Shown here one piece after another: positions 1-53,420 of a DNA stretch of 64,000 nucleotides (position 1 is the stretch's first letter; each line of letters starts with the position of its first letter). The DNA comes from Pelomyxa schiedti (Eukaryota; Protista; Evosea), in NCBI GenBank assembly GCA_020536535.1, contig JAHLWZ010000812.1, positions 1 through 64,000 on the forward strand. Direction: 5' to 3'. The notes beneath the pieces were generated by a model. It was not told the DNA's origin and ran no database searches. It worked only from the letters and a program-made list of their open reading frames with translations. A program made the position numbers and the translations under genes.

Positions 1-291
1 TTTGGAACAGGGTGATCCCGATCTGTGGCTCTCCAAATTGCTCAAAGCGTAACCACTGTGGGGCTTTTCTCCCAAAGTGGACCCATTTACTGGAGGGTGG
101 GAACACTTTGACTTTAGGGTGTTTGGGCACCTCTTCTTAATGATCAGTGTGGCAACGTGGTTGCTGTGCAAGAGCTCGTTCCAGGACCCGGTTCCGGTCA
201 CCCTGCAGAAGAACGGCTCGCCATCGATTGGGAAGCCTTTCCACGAGGTCACGTCGGCTGTCGAAGCTCCCTCCTCCTCTGTGCCTCGCAT
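1..291 (-). CDS. 5' part of unknown repeated-module protein (copy A); runs off the window
   Basis: ATG at 291 gives MRGTEEEGASTADVTSWKGFPIDGEPFFCRVTGTGSWNELLHSNHVATLIIKK. Many differences from the copy at 51447+ are synonymous in this frame (ACC/ACT, GGG/GGA, GCC/GCT, ATT/ATC, AAG/AAA). Confidence 0.65.
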   Translation of the reverse strand, partial: MRGTEEEGASTADVTSWKGFPIDGEPFFCRVTGTGSWNELLHSNHVATLIIKKRCPNTLKSKCSHPPVNGSTLGEKPHSGYALSNLESHRSGSPCSK

Positions 292-1070
292 CGTCGTTGT
301 TTTGTGTTGTGTTGGGCCAAAGAAGAAGAAATTTTTTGTCACCATACATAATACCATTCTTTGAACCCATTTCTTTCTTGTACTTTTGCGAACCGCAGTC
401 ACCTTCAAAGATACATGGATCATTTTTTATGCGAAGATGTAGTTTTACTCTTCTTCGTATAAATTTATACGAAGCCGGAAAGAGTTTTCCTCCTTCGAAG
501 CTTCCACATTCTTCACAATGACAAAAGCAGTTGCAATCCCTCAACTTATAAGCAGGGGAAAGTACCGGTAACAAAATAAATTTGTTTAAAACAAAACACA
601 ACGAAGACGACGATTGTTATGCGACGGAAGTGGGCTGGGAACGACACATGCCGTCTTCGTTACAGCACCCTGCGTTTTTCTCTCTTTTTTTTCTTTGTGG
701 GCATTGGGGCCTTTCAGTGTTTTACTTTCGAAAACCGCAGGTTAACGTGGAGGATTTATCGTTTTTTTTTTTTTTTGGCAGTGTGGGGTGGAAATGGCCA
801 TTGGTCAATGTGCCTGGCTGCTGGGACCGAGCTCGCACAAGGGAGACCTACGGGAACTAGGCTCCCTTTGGCTTGGTCTTGTCTTCCGCTGTCTCCAATG
901 GCCATGGAAGCCCCACGTTTTCTTTTTTTCTTCTTTTTGGTTTCATCGGTTTTTCCATTCGGCCTACATAGTGCATCATATCAAACAGCATCAGTTCGAA
1001 GTATTTTCACCAGGTTGTTATGCGTTTTCCTCTTTCGTAACTAACTGGGTGGTTTCCAAGTCGTTGAATG
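122..1070. repeat. Dispersed inverted repeat; partner at about 50715-51617
   Basis: Long near-identical blocks in reverse complement, e.g. 783-916 vs 50838-50972 and 340-560 vs 51220-51420. Weaker similarity continues to about 1475 vs 50565-50680. Confidence 0.95.
783..916 (+). ncRNA. Predicted structured RNA element, copy A (single X/Y motif)
   Basis: Nested helices GTGGGG 783-788/CCCCAC 911-916; ATGGCCATTGG 794-804/CCAATGGCCAT 895-905; GACCGAGC 825-832/GCTTGGTC 871-878; AAGGGAG 839-845/CTCCCTT 862-868; CCTA/TAGG. Motif Y at 812-824 faces a degenerate X at 879-889. Confidence 0.6.
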
Positions 1071-1720
1071 ATGTCCTACATAGTTTTCTCCGGCGCACTT
1101 GCGTACTATCGCAGTCTTTGCTTGTAGCTGAACTCGAGTACATTCAGGTTTTCTTGTTTAGTTTTTCTGACTTTGACTGACTGAGTCATTTTACAGCTTT
1201 GTGAGGCCTCTTGTCACCCTGAAATTCGGAAATTGCTTGAATGGGAACACTCTAAGAAAGAATCTTTGACCTTTTCGCGCAAGGTAGTTGTGTTTAATCT
1301 TTCATCCTAACTGGTTTTTAGTGTTACGAATGAATACATATGTGCGACTTGGTTTTCTATGCTCACTTGAGAGGTCGTGTTCCATTAGAATAGTTCAGGT
1401 TTGCTTGTTCACTTTTTCTTTCTTTTACTTACGCAGTTTTGTCCAGAACGGAAGTGAGGCTTCTTGTCACGTTCTTGTTGTCACACTCTTGGCCTCTCGA
1501 ACCATTGTTCTGTGTAGAACCCACCGGCAAACTTCAGAACTGTGCTCCATTTTTGAACAAAAGACCAGTTTTTTAACATGTTAAATGTTAACCAAACCAA
1601 CGTTTTATTTTTTCTTTCAAGTCCAAATCGGACTTTGTTGTTCCTCTCGGAGGAGACTAACTTGGCGCGTTCTATCTGTGCTGTCTCAGACCATGTAAAT
1701 GGGGATAACCTGCGAGTCCA
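1040..1720 (+). other. Probable spliced transcript downstream of the structured element; coding status unclear
   Basis: CAG|gtttt...tttacag intron-like segments; exons can join as FLRRTCVLSQSLLVAELEYIQ|LCEASCHPEIRKLLEW. Internal duplication 1140-1240 vs 1395-1475. Homologous segments at 47740-47860 and 50565-50680 on the minus strand. Confidence 0.35.
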
Positions 1721-2861: not shown

Positions 2862-3001
2862 TATCACTTTGCAACATTACGTAGCAAATCCAGACCGCCA
2901 ACCTCTCTTGTGCTGCGTATTACTCACCAGAAAGAAAACACATGATCATCAAAAAAAAGTGGCTTTTTGTCATCCAAAGGGTAGGAGCTGACTTACTTAT
3001 T

Positions 3002-3020
3002 GTTAGGGTTAGGGTTAGGG
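3002..3020 (+). repeat. Interstitial G(TTAGGG)3
   Basis: gttagggttagggttaggg seen directly. Confidence 0.9.
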
Positions 3021-46695: not shown

Positions 46696-47602
46696 ATGAG
46701 TTACGTCGGGGAAGGAGGAGGAGGGCTCGACGACGAGGGGCTGGAGGAGAACGAGGTGATGGAGGAAGGGGGAGGGCCGCAGGGGATGGGGATGGGAGGC
46801 GGGGGAGGCGCGGGGGGCGGGGAGGGCCTGTCGCTGCCAAAGGCCACCGTCACCAAGCTGATCAAGGAGCTGGTGCCGGCAAACATGCGGTGCCCAACGG
46901 ACACGAGGGACTTGATGCTGGACTGCTGCGTTGGTGAGCTGGCCAAACCCCTCGTCATGTCACACTCTTGTGTGGCTCTTGTTATGGTTTATGTTTGGTG
47001 GCTGTGTTTGCTTTGGTTGTGGGTTTTGTTTTGTTGGATGGGGTAATGTTGTTTTGATGCCATTCCTCTCGTACTCAGAGTTTATTCACTTGGTGGCTAC
47101 GCAGGCGAATGATGCTGCATGCAAGACAAACAAGAAGACAATATCTGGTCCTCATGTTTTGGAAGCTCTCAAAGTACTAATCATTGGCCTGTTTTGAGCA
47201 AGCGTGTCACAGACACGATATAATAACCCCAAATAAACAAACAAAACCATCGCACCGAATCACAACCTCACACAATACAAAAATCAGCTTTGACTGAGTC
47301 ACAAACATATTGAAGGAACTTGGGTTTGACCAATATATTGGGCAAGCAACTCTCACCTATGGACAGCACAGAGAAGGACAAGCGGTATGCAAACCACAAC
47401 TAACTACAAATTAACCCGAATCAGGACAAACCCAAAGGCAGAAAAGGGAAAATGGCATCCAAGGGTGTTTCAGAAGAAGAATTGGAGCGGGAACAGGAAG
47501 CTTGCTTTGATAAGGTTTTCCCATCTTTCTTCTCTTGAAATTTGACTGCGAATCAAGGCACAAGCAGCATTTGAGGGGAGGCAAGGCCTCACGCTATCAT
47601 GA
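46696..47602 (+). CDS. DR1: Negative cofactor 2 beta (Dr1), histone-fold
   Basis: LSLPKATVTKLIKE...DCCV|EFIHLVATQAND...KKTISGPHVLEALK|ELGF, EEELEREQE. Confidence 0.92.
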
Positions 47603-47938
47603 GACCAAACAAAACAAAGCAACATTTCGAAATATCAACAAGAACTGCGTAAAAAAAAGCTATTGCTGTTTTGAAGAAAAGAAATTCTTCATTTAAGTTT
47701 GGCAAAATTGGAGATAGGTGGTAGATTATGCAGAACTAAAGGCCCCTGTACAAAAGTAAGATCAAGAAAAACTAAATCAAACAACCTGAAGGTGCCGGTA
47801 ATACTTCCTAAAGTTGGCAAGCCGCGAGGTATCCAAGAAAAGTGCGGTAGAAGAGAAAACTGAACATAGCATAGCCGTTGTATAAGTATGTTACAGAAAC
47901 GTTCGAGAACTATTCTATTTTGTGAACTACCAACCCCT

Positions 47939-48123
47939 GGGGGGGACTTGGCTCCAGCAGCCAGGCCAGGTTGATCCGAAGGCGGGAGTCAGTCACTGGC
48001 CCACACAAAAGTGACAAGCAATCACAAAAACTGAATAAAAACAATGACGAAAAATAAAGGGCACAGTTCCAGCAGCCAGGCCTCATCGGACCATAGGCGG
48101 GAGTCAGTCGCCAAGCCCACCCC
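47939..48123 (-). ncRNA. Predicted structured RNA element, copy B (two X/Y motifs, two-fold symmetric)
   Basis: Exact direct repeats tccagcagccaggcc (47953-47967, 48068-48082) and aggcgggagtcagtc (47980-47994, 48095-48109). Flanks and spacers are mutually complementary: 47944-52/48110-18, 47972-79/48086-93, 47995-48002/48059-67. Confidence 0.65.
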
Positions 48124-48549
48124 GTCCCACTCCCCTGTCACTACTTGTATACCTTATGGTACGAATCAACTAAGAAATCAACTCGCTTTGGAGAGTTAAA
48201 GGTAGCGCTCAAAGGTGCGAGGAAGGGGAAAAAGACGCGATAAGAAGGCGGAGAAAAAGAAACAAAGAAAAAAGACGCGACACAGCCGCATAGGCCCAGC
48301 ATGCTCCCAAAGTGCGTACGGACAGATGTTGCCTCCCAAATTTGTTCCCCCTACGTTGCGCCTGTCGTCGGCTCGCCACTCGTTTTTTACAATATTTATA
48401 GATTCAAGTGAATCAAGTTATCAAATTTAAATAAGGGAAAATTGACGTACTAAATGCAACTCCGGCTGTGAATGTCACCAAAACACTGACTGATAGACTC
48501 AAGCGATCGCTGATTACTGGGGTCCTTACAGTTTCACCTCAAAGTCTTG

Positions 48550-50110
48550 TCCTACTCTCTCTAGTTGAGGTTGGTGTTGAATATTGTGCGGATCTCAGCG
48601 AAGGTTCGAGAGGATGCATGGGAGCTGATGCTAAAACAAGGTGAAGTTCCACCAGGAATACAAAGGGGCAGTGTGCTTCTTTCTTGGAGCCGCACACACG
48701 AGCTCCAGCGCAAGTATTCCATTCACGCAATTCTTAAGAGATTCGAGAAGTAGAGAGAGCCAGAGGTTTGTATTACTTATTCCCAGCACTCTCTAACTCT
48801 CCACACAGAACACTGCAATTGAAGATTACGTGGATTACTACCCCAAAGTGGAGGAGTGTTATGATGAAACTCCAAGTGATGACAACTCAGATTATTGTTT
48901 GGAGACGGACTTTGTGCCTGATGAAGAGGCCATACTGGCCAAATCGGCTGATAAACCTCTGGTATTCGAAGGTGATTGGTCCCCTGAACCCAAGGTATCC
49001 AATGGTTACATTAGATTAAACCTAATATGTTTTATGTTTTCTTCCATTAGCCTGCACCACTTCCCACTCTGGAGGTACCAAAGGCTGGTGAGTTCGAGAT
49101 ACCGGCCGATTTAGCCGATTACGATGACGGTGAAAAGCTTCTGTTTAGTCCCTCTCCGCCACAGGAGTATTCATCCATTAGCACCAGCGAGGCAACAGAG
49201 GCCACTAAGAGCACAGAAGGCAGCAAGGATGCAAATCAACACCTACCATCTGACCTTGTGCACTTCAGAACAGCATGGCAACTTGTATGTTTGCACTGCA
49301 TTCCCTTGTGGTTTGGGATGGAGTGAGCTTTTTCTGACAAAGTCCAAGGTGCTTTTGTGCCTGAAGTCTAAGAAGGATTTTGAAGGGGCTCGGGCAGTAT
49401 CCAGAGAGATGAAAGCAATTGTTGAATCGGTGGAGCGTGTCTTCTGGCGCGAACACAGGTTGGACCTGTGTTCCCCCCGAATGCGTGACTTCTTTTCCTG
49501 GATGATCAATGCTAAGATGAAGATTCCTCTGTATGCTATGAGAGTGTCTGACTTGTCTATCAACCTGGCCCCCAACTGTAATCGAATCATGGAGAAGATA
49601 TCTACAGTAGGCGGTTGCCACGCCGAGACAATAAATATCCACTGCAAAACTGGACAGCCTACCAGGATAGACACCCTGCTGAAGGCCATCAGCGTCACCC
49701 TTACACTGGTACTCAAGTCAAACACCATTACTGGAACCCACTTGACGATGTTCCATTGCCCCCAGGAAGCCGTTGCCACCGTCATCGAGATGGTCTCCCA
49801 CCAGAATCCCCACAACATTCACGTGCTCACACTTCGTGGTCCGAACCTCACTGGGCCAGCTTCTACCCCTCTCATTGTCGCTACAACTGCTTCTCCAGTT
49901 ACCCCATCCATGGCTTCCACTTCCTCATATAACCACTGATGAGACTCTGCCCTTTGATGTGCACATTGTGGTGGTTGACGACCAGTGTTGCCGGAAGGTT
50001 GAGAACACCACAGCCGTTGCCTACGCCAAAAGCACCGTAAAGAGGAGCATCGCCTCGGCTCCTGTACATACACATAAACATAAACGACTCTACATGTGTC
50101 TGCGGTCATA
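48550..50110 (+). CDS. Repeated-module protein, copy B (unknown N-domain, acidic linker, F-box-like motif, unknown C-domain); start and frame integrity uncertain
   Basis: Colinear with copy C: GEVPPGIQR..SWSRTHELQRKYS; PLVFEGDWSPEPK|; LPSDLVHFRTAWQL|VLLCLKSKKDFEGARAVSRE; HCKTGQ; HCPQE. Confidence 0.6.
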
Positions 50111-50714
50111 ACAGGCCACGTCAGGTTGCGCAGTTCGGTGCTCAGCCCACTCCTCAAAGAGGAAAAAAAATACCCGTGGTTCAGCTAACAGATCAGGCTC
50201 CCAACCAAGGTGAACGTTCCCGACCTACCGCCCAGAACCATAGAGGTGAGGACAACACTGCCGGTTGTTTCGGCAAGAACAAGGCGAGTCTGGGGGGTGG
50301 GCATTGATTAGAAATCATCAGAGACAATTAGAAACCGATTAGAACGTCCATTTTGGACGCTTTTTACGGTAAACTCACTAATACCTCCCTCCGCCTAAAA
50401 GGATATGCACCTAGCTTGCCCTACATACAATCCGGCATCCTTTTCACCGGGCACAAAAAACCCACAGTACCTTGAAAAAGCAAGTTCTACGATGAATGGC
50501 AAAGATTTTTGTTTTCAAACAGAATGTGGGGTATCAAAGGCTGGGTTATTCTGTCTGTTCTCTACCAATTGCCGAATTTCGGAGCGTCTAGGTGTTGTAG
50601 AATGACAAGACCCTGCCTCACTGGGCTGCACAAAACAACATCAGTAAAAGAAGAAAAACTGAACAGACAAACCTTCACACAAGGAAAACTCTGTCGCACG
50701 TATCCAACTGAAAG

Positions 50715-51617
50715 TCCAGACAACTTGGAGATACACGGTTAGTTACGAAAGAGGAAACACGGAACTACCTTATGCTAGCCGGCTGAATGAAAAACAATGC
50801 AACCGAAAAAAACAGAGAAAAAAAAAAAAAGGTAAACGTGGGGCTTCCGGGGCCATTGGAGACAGCGGAAGTCAGTTACCAAGCCAAAGGGAGCCTAGTT
50901 CCCGTAGGTCTCCCTTGTGCGAGCTCGGTCCCAGCAGCCAGGCACATTGACCAATGGCCCTTTCCACCCCACACTGCCAAAAAAAAAAAAAACGATAAAT
51001 CCTCCAGCTGTCTACGTAACCTGCGGTTTTCGAAAGTAAAACATTGAAAGGACCCCAAAGACCACAAAGAAAAAAAAGAGAGAGAAAAACGCAGGGTGCT
51101 GCAACGAAGACGGCTTGTGTCGTCTGTGTTCCTCCAAACCCGCATCCTCCCCAGTGTCGCAGAACAATCCGCATTGTCGTCTTCGTTGTTTTATTATTTT
51201 TCTTTGTAAACAGGTTTCTCCTGCTTATAAGTTGAGGGATTGCAACTGATCTTGTCATTTTGAAGAATGTGGCACAAACACCGAAGCTTCGAAGGAGGAA
51301 AACTCATTTCGGCTTCGTATAAACTTCTTCTTCGCATAAAAAATGATCCATGTATCTTTGAAGGTGAACTGCGGTTCGCAAAAGGACAAGGAAATGGGTT
51401 CAAAGAATGGTATTATGTGTGGGGACAAAAAAGAAAACAAAAAACGATGTGATACACGGAGGAGGAGGAAGCTTCGACAACCGATGCGACCTCGTGGCAA
51501 TGCTTCCCAATCGATGGCGAGCCGTTCTTCTGCAGGGTGACCGGAACTGGATCCTGGAACAACCTTTTGCACAGCAACCACATGGCTACACTCATCATCA
51601 AAAAGAGGTGCCCAAAG
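50715..51617. repeat. Dispersed inverted repeat; partner at 122-1070
   Basis: Reverse-complement identity to the start of the window. Confidence 0.95.
50838..50972 (-). ncRNA. Predicted structured RNA element, copy C (single X/Y motif)
   Basis: Same fold as 783-916, with a U-A to G-C compensatory change in the GGCCAUUGG helix. X = AACUGACUUCCGC (50865-50877), Y at 50931-50943. Confidence 0.65.
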
Positions 51618-53420
51618 GAGGCAACAGATGCACAGGCTCGCTTTTGGCAACAGCAGAGCCTCAGCACGAATTATCGAAAGAGGCACAGGTACCACAAGGT
51701 GGGTGAGGACGTGTTTGCGGCCATGCAAAGGAACGGGGAGGTGCCTGAGGGCATCCCCCGTGACAGGGTGTGGGTGGCATGGTGCAGGTCGCATGAGCTG
51801 AACAAGAGGTATTCCTTCAAAGCCATTTGCAAACGACTCGGCCAGGACCCAGTCACAGGAAAAATGGCTGTGTGTAGAGTGGTGGAAGTGGGGTGTCGTG
51901 GTTTCCTCCTGATTGCAGAGCAGTCTTCTCTCATCTCATCTCCTCTCCTCTCTCACGTACTCCCCCTTGTCTGTTTGTAACTTCATTGACAGAAGAGAAA
52001 TGCCCAAGTACCAACAGAAGAAGAAGATGATGATGGTGAAGAGCAAGAATGTTACAGTAGTGACCAGGAGGAGGAGGACGATGATTACAACCTTGCGCCA
52101 GAGGAATATTCCTCCAGCCGTCCGCGCCAAGACCCGTCCTTGAAGTGGGAACTGAGCAGAATACCAGTCATTCTCGAGGGTGACCTCATTCCCCCGCCAA
52201 AGGTACTTCTTGCTTGTTGGCTGCGCGGCACTTTCTCATTCCACATCCATCCATCATCAGGCCCCAATCTTGTCTGATGCTGAGAACTGGGGATTGGCTC
52301 TCGATTTGTCACAGATCAAGGACACGGTTCGTTTCGTTCACACTCACACTTCAATTCCCTTTCCCTCTCTCCCTTCCCCCACTTCCACCACGCCCACAGG
52401 AGGATGATTCTGAGGAAGAAGGCACCACTTCCACAGAGGAGACGTTGGAACAAGAGCCTGATGCAAAACCACCCCATGACGTCGTCCGCTTTCGGTCAGC
52501 CTGGATAATGGTGTGTGCCCCATGTGTCTCTTTCTGGATATCTCATAATTTTCAACAGATTTTGATGCTGTTGTCTCCTGTTGCATTTGAGAGAATGAGG
52601 GGTGTGTGCAAGGGACTCCTGACACTTGTGAGGTCTCTTGAGAGAACTTTCTGGTGCGAGTTGCGATACAATTTCTGCAACCCCAGAGAACGCCAACACT
52701 ACATGAGAGAGAAAGCAAATGCACCTGCGGTGCGTGCTACAGAGATGGCAATCAACTGTTCCCCAATCTGCCTTCAGACAGTGCACGAACTCGAGGTATA
52801 TGGGGGCTTCATTGCCAAGCGATTTGATATACACTGTACCACTGGACAAAACGCCACGCCCAATACACTTTGGTCGGCCATCATCAGCACAGTGGAAGGG
52901 GTCATGAGAGCCAACACCCGCCCGGACACCCAGCTCATCGTCCACCACTGCCCCCAGGAAATGGTCGGCACCATCATCCACGCCGTGATGTCGATCCAGG
53001 AGCCCAGCAACATCAGCCTGCTCACCATCATCGGGGACAACCAAATCACATTCCCCCCTGGGTTCCGGCCTCTGCCGCCCGACTCGAAGAGGTGCCTGCC
53101 AAGAATAGAACTTGAAGTCGACCACGACAGATCATGCTGCACCATGACCGACTCCCACAGTCATCAACAACATACCACCCCGCGCCCAGCCCACTTCCAC
53201 CCGCGCCCTGGCCCCTGCCCCCACCATCAATAACAACAACAACAATAATAACGACAGGAGGGCCAGCAGCAGCCAAAACAACAACGGGGGGGCCAACGGC
53301 GGGACAGTCACGGGGAAGAGGTTGGCGCCGGGGACACCCCCTCGTGTGCTCCTGCCCCCACCAACCACATTCACAAATGGGGCCACTGGCGAAAACAATC
53401 GCCGCCGTAGACTGTCGTGA
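51447..53420 (+). pseudogene. Repeated-module protein, copy C (F-box-like), probably disabled
   Basis: Codon 2 is TGA (51450-52) where copy A has CGA. The natural-looking tail PTPTVINN...NNNNNNNDRR...RRRLS* is in a shifted frame after about 53145. F-box-like PPHDVVRFRSAWIM|ILMLLSPVAFERMRGVCKGL. Confidence 0.55.

Follow-up and report, generated by a model that had tools for sequence, protein, structure and literature searches.

A structured RNA element, referred to here as the rod, is present in nine diverged copies in the genome of Pelomyxa schiedti and is built around a recurrent, previously undescribed motif of about 26 nt, in which a sequence X faces a sequence Y. The structure of the rod is real and under selection, and its RNA constitutes an undescribed family that is so far confined to one species, a distribution that limits its reach. 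All nine rods lie at loci of a single gene family and none is found elsewhere in the 52 Mb; a sequence model of one unit finds only C69, C714, C794, C812 (three rods), C815, C831 and C933, the loci being named after their contigs. Every rod lies antisense to an intron-containing gene of the orphan-domain/F-box-like/LRR-like type, or to a remnant of one, at a distance of a few hundred bases on its upstream side. The assembly comprises 52,367,397 bases in 5337 contigs, and the window, meaning the whole 64-kb stretch that was analyzed, is contig C812, which holds copies A, B and C. According to its published description, the genome was assembled from single cells after amplification, comprises 52.4 Mb in 5337 scaffolds and has 7.43 introns per gene (PMC8887013).

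Copy B is the two-module form of the rod in the window. Its minimum free energy fold on the minus strand is the rod (-69.9 kcal/mol, z -2.9, equalled by 2 of 200 shuffles), and the plus strand reaches -57.8 kcal/mol (z -2.1). A sequence-only reading of this DNA had described two units, each with an X and a Y and with identical cores, and both units are located on the minus strand as claimed. The three flank and spacer helices also pair as described, the inner one with a bulged U, and both wobbles in these helices are G-U on that strand. The parts of copy B are as follows.

47939..48123, minus strand: two-module RNA rod of copy B, with outer module X1:Y2, central helix, inner module Y1:X2 and U-rich apical region
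48095..48109, minus strand: X1, 5' strand of the outer module
48086..48093, minus strand: 5' strand of the central helix, with its partner at 47972-47979
48068..48083, minus strand: Y1, 5' strand of the inner module
48003..48058, minus strand: U-rich apical region, which would correspond to the U-tracts at the base of C-type rods if the rod is permuted (see below)
47980..47994, minus strand: X2, 3' strand of the inner module
47972..47979, minus strand: 3' strand of the central helix
47953..47968, minus strand: Y2, 3' strand of the outer module
47934..48228, minus strand: extended fold, with an outer G/C stem and a 5' hairpin
48215-48221 and 48130-48136, minus strand: motifs of the 5' hairpin, which are located in the apical arm in C-type rods

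The register of the module is A-G, C-G, U-U, G-C, A-G, C-U, U-C, Y-G, C-G, C-U plus a bulged C, G-C and C-G. The shared part of the loop consists of a closing G-C, A-G, C-U, U-C, two pairs, C-U plus the bulged C and two G-C pairs, to which C-G/U-U and an A-G on the other side of the loop are added in most copies. In C933, the part that begins at G-C and runs to the end of the last two pairs is retained and the remainder is altered, so this part is regarded as the deepest core. The tandem G-A proposed earlier is present in B and C69, but elsewhere the position is G-A, A-G, C-G or U-A. The 13-nt core of Y has nine exact matches in the genome, all within the rod family, compared with zero for the reversed control.

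Conservation of the cores far exceeds that of the neighboring genes. The X and Y cores of B and C69 differ at 2 of 52 positions, while synonymous divergence of the neighboring genes (pS) is 0.34-0.42 (binomial p ~1e-7). The B-type and C-type cores have one constant difference, and their genes are near saturation (pS 0.77). Positions -3 to -6 of the helix are paired in 36 of 36 cells across nine intact modules, and 97% of cells are paired in an alignment of eight rows, against 24-53% in slid controls. The flanking helices show C-G/U-A, G-C/A-U and U-A/C-G swaps, with changes on both sides in three columns; the central helix has eight pairs in B, nine in C69 and six in C794, with C-G to A-U swaps. 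The covariation score is matched by 29 of 500 shuffles and is modest because there are only about four independent module lineages. Together, the core conservation, the paired and covarying stems and the G-U bias described below uphold the earlier proposal of a sequence-specific RNA module under purifying selection. The unpaired loop positions are as fixed as the paired ones. Fixed unpaired bases within exchangeable stems are expected of a recognition or catalytic surface, and because they are arranged in this way in the rod, such a surface is suggested here.

At the flanking helix positions, nine G-U and zero A-C pairs are observed on the minus, folding strand; since G-U is present and A-C absent, the minus strand is taken as the RNA strand. 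All eight rods tested fold better on the strand equivalent to it. Downstream of the rod, intron-like stretches of 38-62 nt, with GT, a branch-like motif and AG and styled like the annotated introns of the family, occur on the folding strand in eight of the nine copies and on the opposite strand in one. A single match of this kind arises in 25-46% of shuffles of the same T-rich regions and the pattern was chosen after the sequences had been inspected, so that the argument draws its weight from the contrast between strands and from the positions common to the copies. The predicted signals in the window are listed here.

47746..47785, minus strand: predicted intron-like stretch of copy B, 40 nt, with GT, branch-like motif and AG and with counterparts 3' of other rods
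47921..47930, minus strand: predicted GTAGTT motif resembling a 5' splice site, just 3' of the rod and common to most copies
48394..48400, minus strand: TATA-like motif, a candidate RNA promoter judged by its sequence
50626..50768, minus strand: two predicted intron-like stretches 3' of rod C, at 50724-50768 and 50626-50672

These signals point to a putative spliced non-coding transcript, which would share its promoter with the neighboring gene; no conserved open reading frame was found across the rod copies. A U6 snRNA match in the same region (window 47821-47922, plus strand, 17 bits, E 0.11) is absent from C69 and was set aside as chance. An intron-containing histone-fold gene at 46696-47600 on the plus strand of the window resembles NC2-beta/DR1, with a Pfam CBFD_NFYB_HMF match in its first exon (E 0.005); this gene is convergent with the predicted copy B RNA, its 3' end facing the downstream part of that RNA.

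It had also been proposed that the RNA exists as rod or kissing four-way-junction isomers. The first of these is the minimum free energy fold. The second can be drawn, but with the module pairs enforced it is less stable than the rod, before kissing, by 20, 22 and 24 kcal/mol in B, C69 and C794, respectively, and the kissing helix as a free duplex is worth about 12 kcal/mol at most. Copies that lose a module retain the first Y and the last X, which is the rod pairing. A switch between isomers is unlikely because the junction is far less stable and needs both units, and because one-module copies retain the rod pairing. According to these folding models, the rod is the working fold.

Two modules are present in four rods: B, C69 (81% identical to B), C794 (with different flanks) and C933 (divergent). 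In C831, C815 and C714, the inner module is kept and the outer one has decayed yet is recognizable, and in copies A and C the outer module is lost.

50838..50972, minus strand: one-module rod of copy C between U-tracts, with Y at 50930-50943 and X at 50865-50877
783..916, plus strand: one-module rod of copy A, with an intact Y at 812-825 and a degenerate X at 878-889

C794, C831, C815 and C714 form a series in which a two-module rod loses one module step by step. The spacer between modules varies from 11 to 16 nt, and three copies have only one intact module. The earlier claim that X:Y occurs once in copies A and C does not hold for copy A, where Y is intact but X is degenerate, as it is in C714, and was missed by the X search. 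The helices of A and C had been called unrelated, which proved incorrect, since the C helix is homologous and matches the outer helix of B at 12 of 18 positions. C1018 is the only relative with neither the RNA nor the N-terminal domain (N-domain) of the neighboring gene family, and its F-box/LRR part is present.

Copy A is a mosaic: its downstream region, at window positions 1266-1520, is 90% identical to that of C794 (L057 3890-4140), whereas rod and gene resemble those of C714. TTAGGG repeats form a short internal run at window 3001-3020. In or near the family copies, local inverted duplications are found on C794 (L057 6024-6248, 1629-1883 and 3608-3692) and C815 (L061 5050-5410), and these may be amplification chimeras.

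The copies also differ in where the ends of the rod lie. In C-type rods, U-tracts flank the base and a GC-rich arm forms the cap; B and C69 instead have their U-rich part at the apex, and the cap motifs of the C-type are found outside the rod. When B and C69 are cut in the middle of the U-rich loop and the halves are swapped, the alignment to the six C-type copies improves in 12 of 12 comparisons, which are non-independent, and in 11 of 12 with T-runs collapsed. The identity of flanks and spacers alone gives a mixed picture. From these alignments, B (and C69) is probably a circular permutation of its C-type sisters; the simplest route to it would be a tandem duplication from which the outer halves were lost. 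If the permutation is real, the fold is what counts, wherever its ends lie. The natural variants already separate required from free features: module number, altered stems, a tandem G-A that can be lost and, probably, a permuted backbone. The same palindromic spacer is present in both units of C933, which suggests that the rod began as a duplicated self-complementary unit.

The neighboring genes, whose models were queried exon by exon or via public identifiers, encode a protein that combines a basic orphan N-domain and an acidic linker with an F-box-like segment and beta-alpha repeats. The match of the F-box-like segment to Pfam F-box is weak (E 0.064). The best structural matches of the C-terminal model are LRR proteins such as RanGAP and FBXL3 (Z 6.9), with Z values of about 6-7, all below 8, so that an LRR-like nature of the modeled repeats is suggestive only. 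Fold searches with the N-domain (model pLDDT 69) gave no match and no RNA-binding fold, and a reading of this domain as KilA-N, Bro-N or Ski-like is unsupported by them. No homologs were found outside Pelomyxa; protein searches with both domains, including Atlas, return only Pelomyxa schiedti models. The N-domains are down to 42-48% identical among copies, and their dN/dS of 0.19-0.38 indicates that the gene family has been functional. The genes in the window are listed below.

48601..49939, plus strand: neighboring gene of copy B, with half an N-domain, an in-frame TAG near 48748, acidic linker, F-box-like and LRR-like parts
51447..53233, plus strand: neighboring gene of copy C, for which public model P0002 has four introns and encodes 449 aa
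122..400, minus strand: 5' half of the neighboring gene of copy A, truncated at 121 by the end of a transposon

By its sequence, the gene of copy B is probably damaged at the 5' end. In the gene of copy C, the codon right after the ATG used by the sister copies is TGA. The genes of C794 and C831 are frameshifted, and no N-domain could be detected in that of C933. Complete rods stand beside broken genes at B, C794 and C933. Some of the breaks may be errors of the amplified single-cell assembly (PMC8887013). The copy A gene and the C714 copy starting at 2529 each resemble one half of a single gene that was interrupted by an element whose ends are CACCCTAA and TTAGGGTG, with duplication of the two bases AA. 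This element has CAC-ended inverted repeats, is CACTA/Mirage/Chapaev-like and lies in the region 690-2529 of L059 (C714); window positions 1-121 are its left end, identical to C714:690-810.

The rod RNA is predicted to dock a protein that is supplied in trans, a reading with roughly even chances. A short non-coding transcript, spliced and placed head-to-head with the F-box-like gene, would have the rod as its functional core, and the functional unit would be the internal loop into which X and Y pair antiparallel. This loop would serve as a recognition site of defined shape and sequence for a trans protein that is conserved across the divergence of the family, and the RNA would act as its tether, decoy or scaffold. 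Two modules, arising by duplication of one self-complementary unit, would add avidity; one module would be enough alone or would be a stage of decay. The least certain part of the proposal is that the partner is a protein, together with its identity. A conserved host protein as partner would mean a new RNA-protein interface, and the F-box protein next door would link a structured RNA to ubiquitin-ligase targeting in a eukaryote. A dimeric site like the polyadenylation inhibition element (PIE) of U1A had been suggested; the two identical loops in one duplex agree with it, but a rigid dimer is doubtful, and the variable spacers and one-module copies favor independent binding sites instead.

The neighbor could itself be the partner, with its basic N-domain binding X:Y to give an RNA-loaded F-box adaptor or a toxin-antidote-like module, analogous to type III toxin-antitoxin systems or autoregulation. 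RNA and N-domain co-occur at eight loci and C1018 lacks both, the N-domain is under constraint as given above, and the C-terminal model best matches LRR proteins, several of them F-box proteins, as is FBXL3. This cognate pair is nevertheless unlikely. A trans partner is favored because X:Y is near-invariant while the N-domains have diverged to the identities given above, and because the RNA outlasts a broken neighboring gene: the N-domain is half lost at B and undetectable at C933, both with two-unit rods. Moreover, the missing RNA-binding fold and the low LRR and F-box scores speak against it. If true, it would be a eukaryotic two-part module, either an RNA-loaded ubiquitin-ligase adaptor or a selfish unit of the RNA-antitoxin type, whose RNA is divergently transcribed and has a new, topology-independent internal-loop motif. 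Considerably less probable is that the rod acts as DNA rather than RNA, either as a single-stranded signal or as a promoter element belonging to a unit that moves or duplicates. The copies are dispersed, partly broken and about 3.5 kb long, and the fold lies near the promoter of the gene. However, their ends are ragged, with no shared sharp termini or terminal repeats and no transposase, reverse transcriptase or HUH match, and the genes retain introns. Covarying stems would also be needless for independent double-stranded DNA motifs, and intron-like signals lie downstream on the folding strand.

An RNA with a catalytic rather than a docking role would suit the near-invariant unpaired core, and two loops per rod recall the layout of the hairpin ribozyme, so that an unrecognized small ribozyme acting through docking of its two loops or in trans was considered. 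Against this stand two identical loops that point apart and the lack of RNA-mediated mobility. Pattern searches of both strands gave no hammerhead, hairpin or twister core, no Rfam ribozyme matched, and a GAC/GUC mini-stem like P3 of HDV is absent from the second units of B and C794 and from C831, C815 and C714. The idea of an unrecognized ribozyme or switch had been raised before; no known ribozyme core is present, the rod/junction switch is unsupported, and a ribozyme of a new kind is very improbable. An antisense guide, in which Y would open and pair with helix 18 (530 loop) of 18S rRNA and X would be the protecting strand, appears slightly more remote still. Y is complementary to nine consecutive bases of Pelomyxa 18S helix 18, with further flank pairs, but the duplexes, at -27 to -32 kcal/mol, are no better than background, their energies being reached by 14, 2, 13, 5 and 0 of 14 background 7.5-kb stretches; the match is lost in C933, and the fixed unpaired X bases are left unexplained. 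Helix 18 itself (C59:21918-21944) is one base off the usual eukaryotic sequence, C to A, near the strand forming the pseudoknot. Least probable of all is that the plus strand mimics SRP RNA helix 8 or that the RNA switches from rod to junction. X and Y of the plus strand can be placed in a register that recalls the symmetric loop bound by SRP54, as in E. coli 4.5S RNA, and a four-way junction is formally possible. The G-U bias favors the minus strand, though, SRP models match six other loci and no rod, and C933 breaks the likeness; the junction carries the energy cost given above and is impossible in one-module copies.

Exact X/Y pattern scans of viral and prokaryotic genome collections gave no match, a result with little bearing on other amoebae since these collections are poor in protists. 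A lone metagenome match lies within a bacterial coding region without a rod and was dismissed as chance. No Rfam covariance model matched over any rod, either at the gathering cut-off or at E values up to 2-10. An HDV-like ribozyme was rejected on this basis and because the P3-like stem is unconserved across copies. SRP RNA identity was also rejected, as the matched loci are all elsewhere; the six SRP RNA loci (C455, C794, C817, C834, C850 and C714) are unusually many and diverged. A 5S rRNA or 5S-derived SINE was discarded, since none of five 5S model matches is in the rod family; these matches, of 60 to 92 bits, are on separate contigs (C828, C179, C133, C702 and C910). Readings of the rod as H/ACA, SECIS, Sm site or branch point were checked and dropped.

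The rod most likely works like known protein-binding internal-loop elements, and it is a member of none of those tested. In SRP helix 8, HIV RRE stem IIB, loop E and the K-turn, fixed non-canonical pairs lie amid freely covarying helices. The rod resembles them in this arrangement, and their consensus cores are absent from the folding strand of the rods. It differs from the K-turn in that its tandem G-A is unconserved and there is no three-base bulge. In the U1A PIE, duplicated elements dimerize U1A and control the mRNA that encodes it (PMC9977717). The likeness lies in two identical loops in one two-fold symmetric duplex, seen in B, C69, C794 and C933, with binding predicted. The rod differs in sequence, having none like U1 loop II, in being antisense and upstream of a gene rather than in a 3' UTR, in its spacing of 11-16 nt instead of a fixed short one, in its one-module copies and in a neighbor without an RRM.

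Other resemblances are more partial. The order X-Y-X-Y parallels C-D'-C'-D of box C/D RNAs and X contains CUGA, but the rod has no box C and its spacers pair mutually rather than being free guides. ENEs stabilize RNAs via a triple helix with poly(A) (PMC12501189, PMC6379651). C-type rods have U-tracts on either side, and C815 and C714 have a lower helix by which a U-rich internal loop is closed; however, the folds predicted for the other copies lack this helix, the loops are uneven and of great length, and the U-rich part of B is apical. The strands of the central helix recall the stem of Y RNA, but the bulged C of the Ro60 site is absent in every copy and the stem is internal and variable in sequence. 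The genome has a TROVE-domain gene (Ro60 or TEP1-like) at C807:26546-27809. Circularly permuted RNA genes, such as those for two-piece tmRNA and permuted tRNAs, can be explained by tandem duplication and loss of the outer halves, and the rod probably shares with them an unchanged fold with relocated ends. The difference is that here both arrangements coexist as paralogs in one genome.
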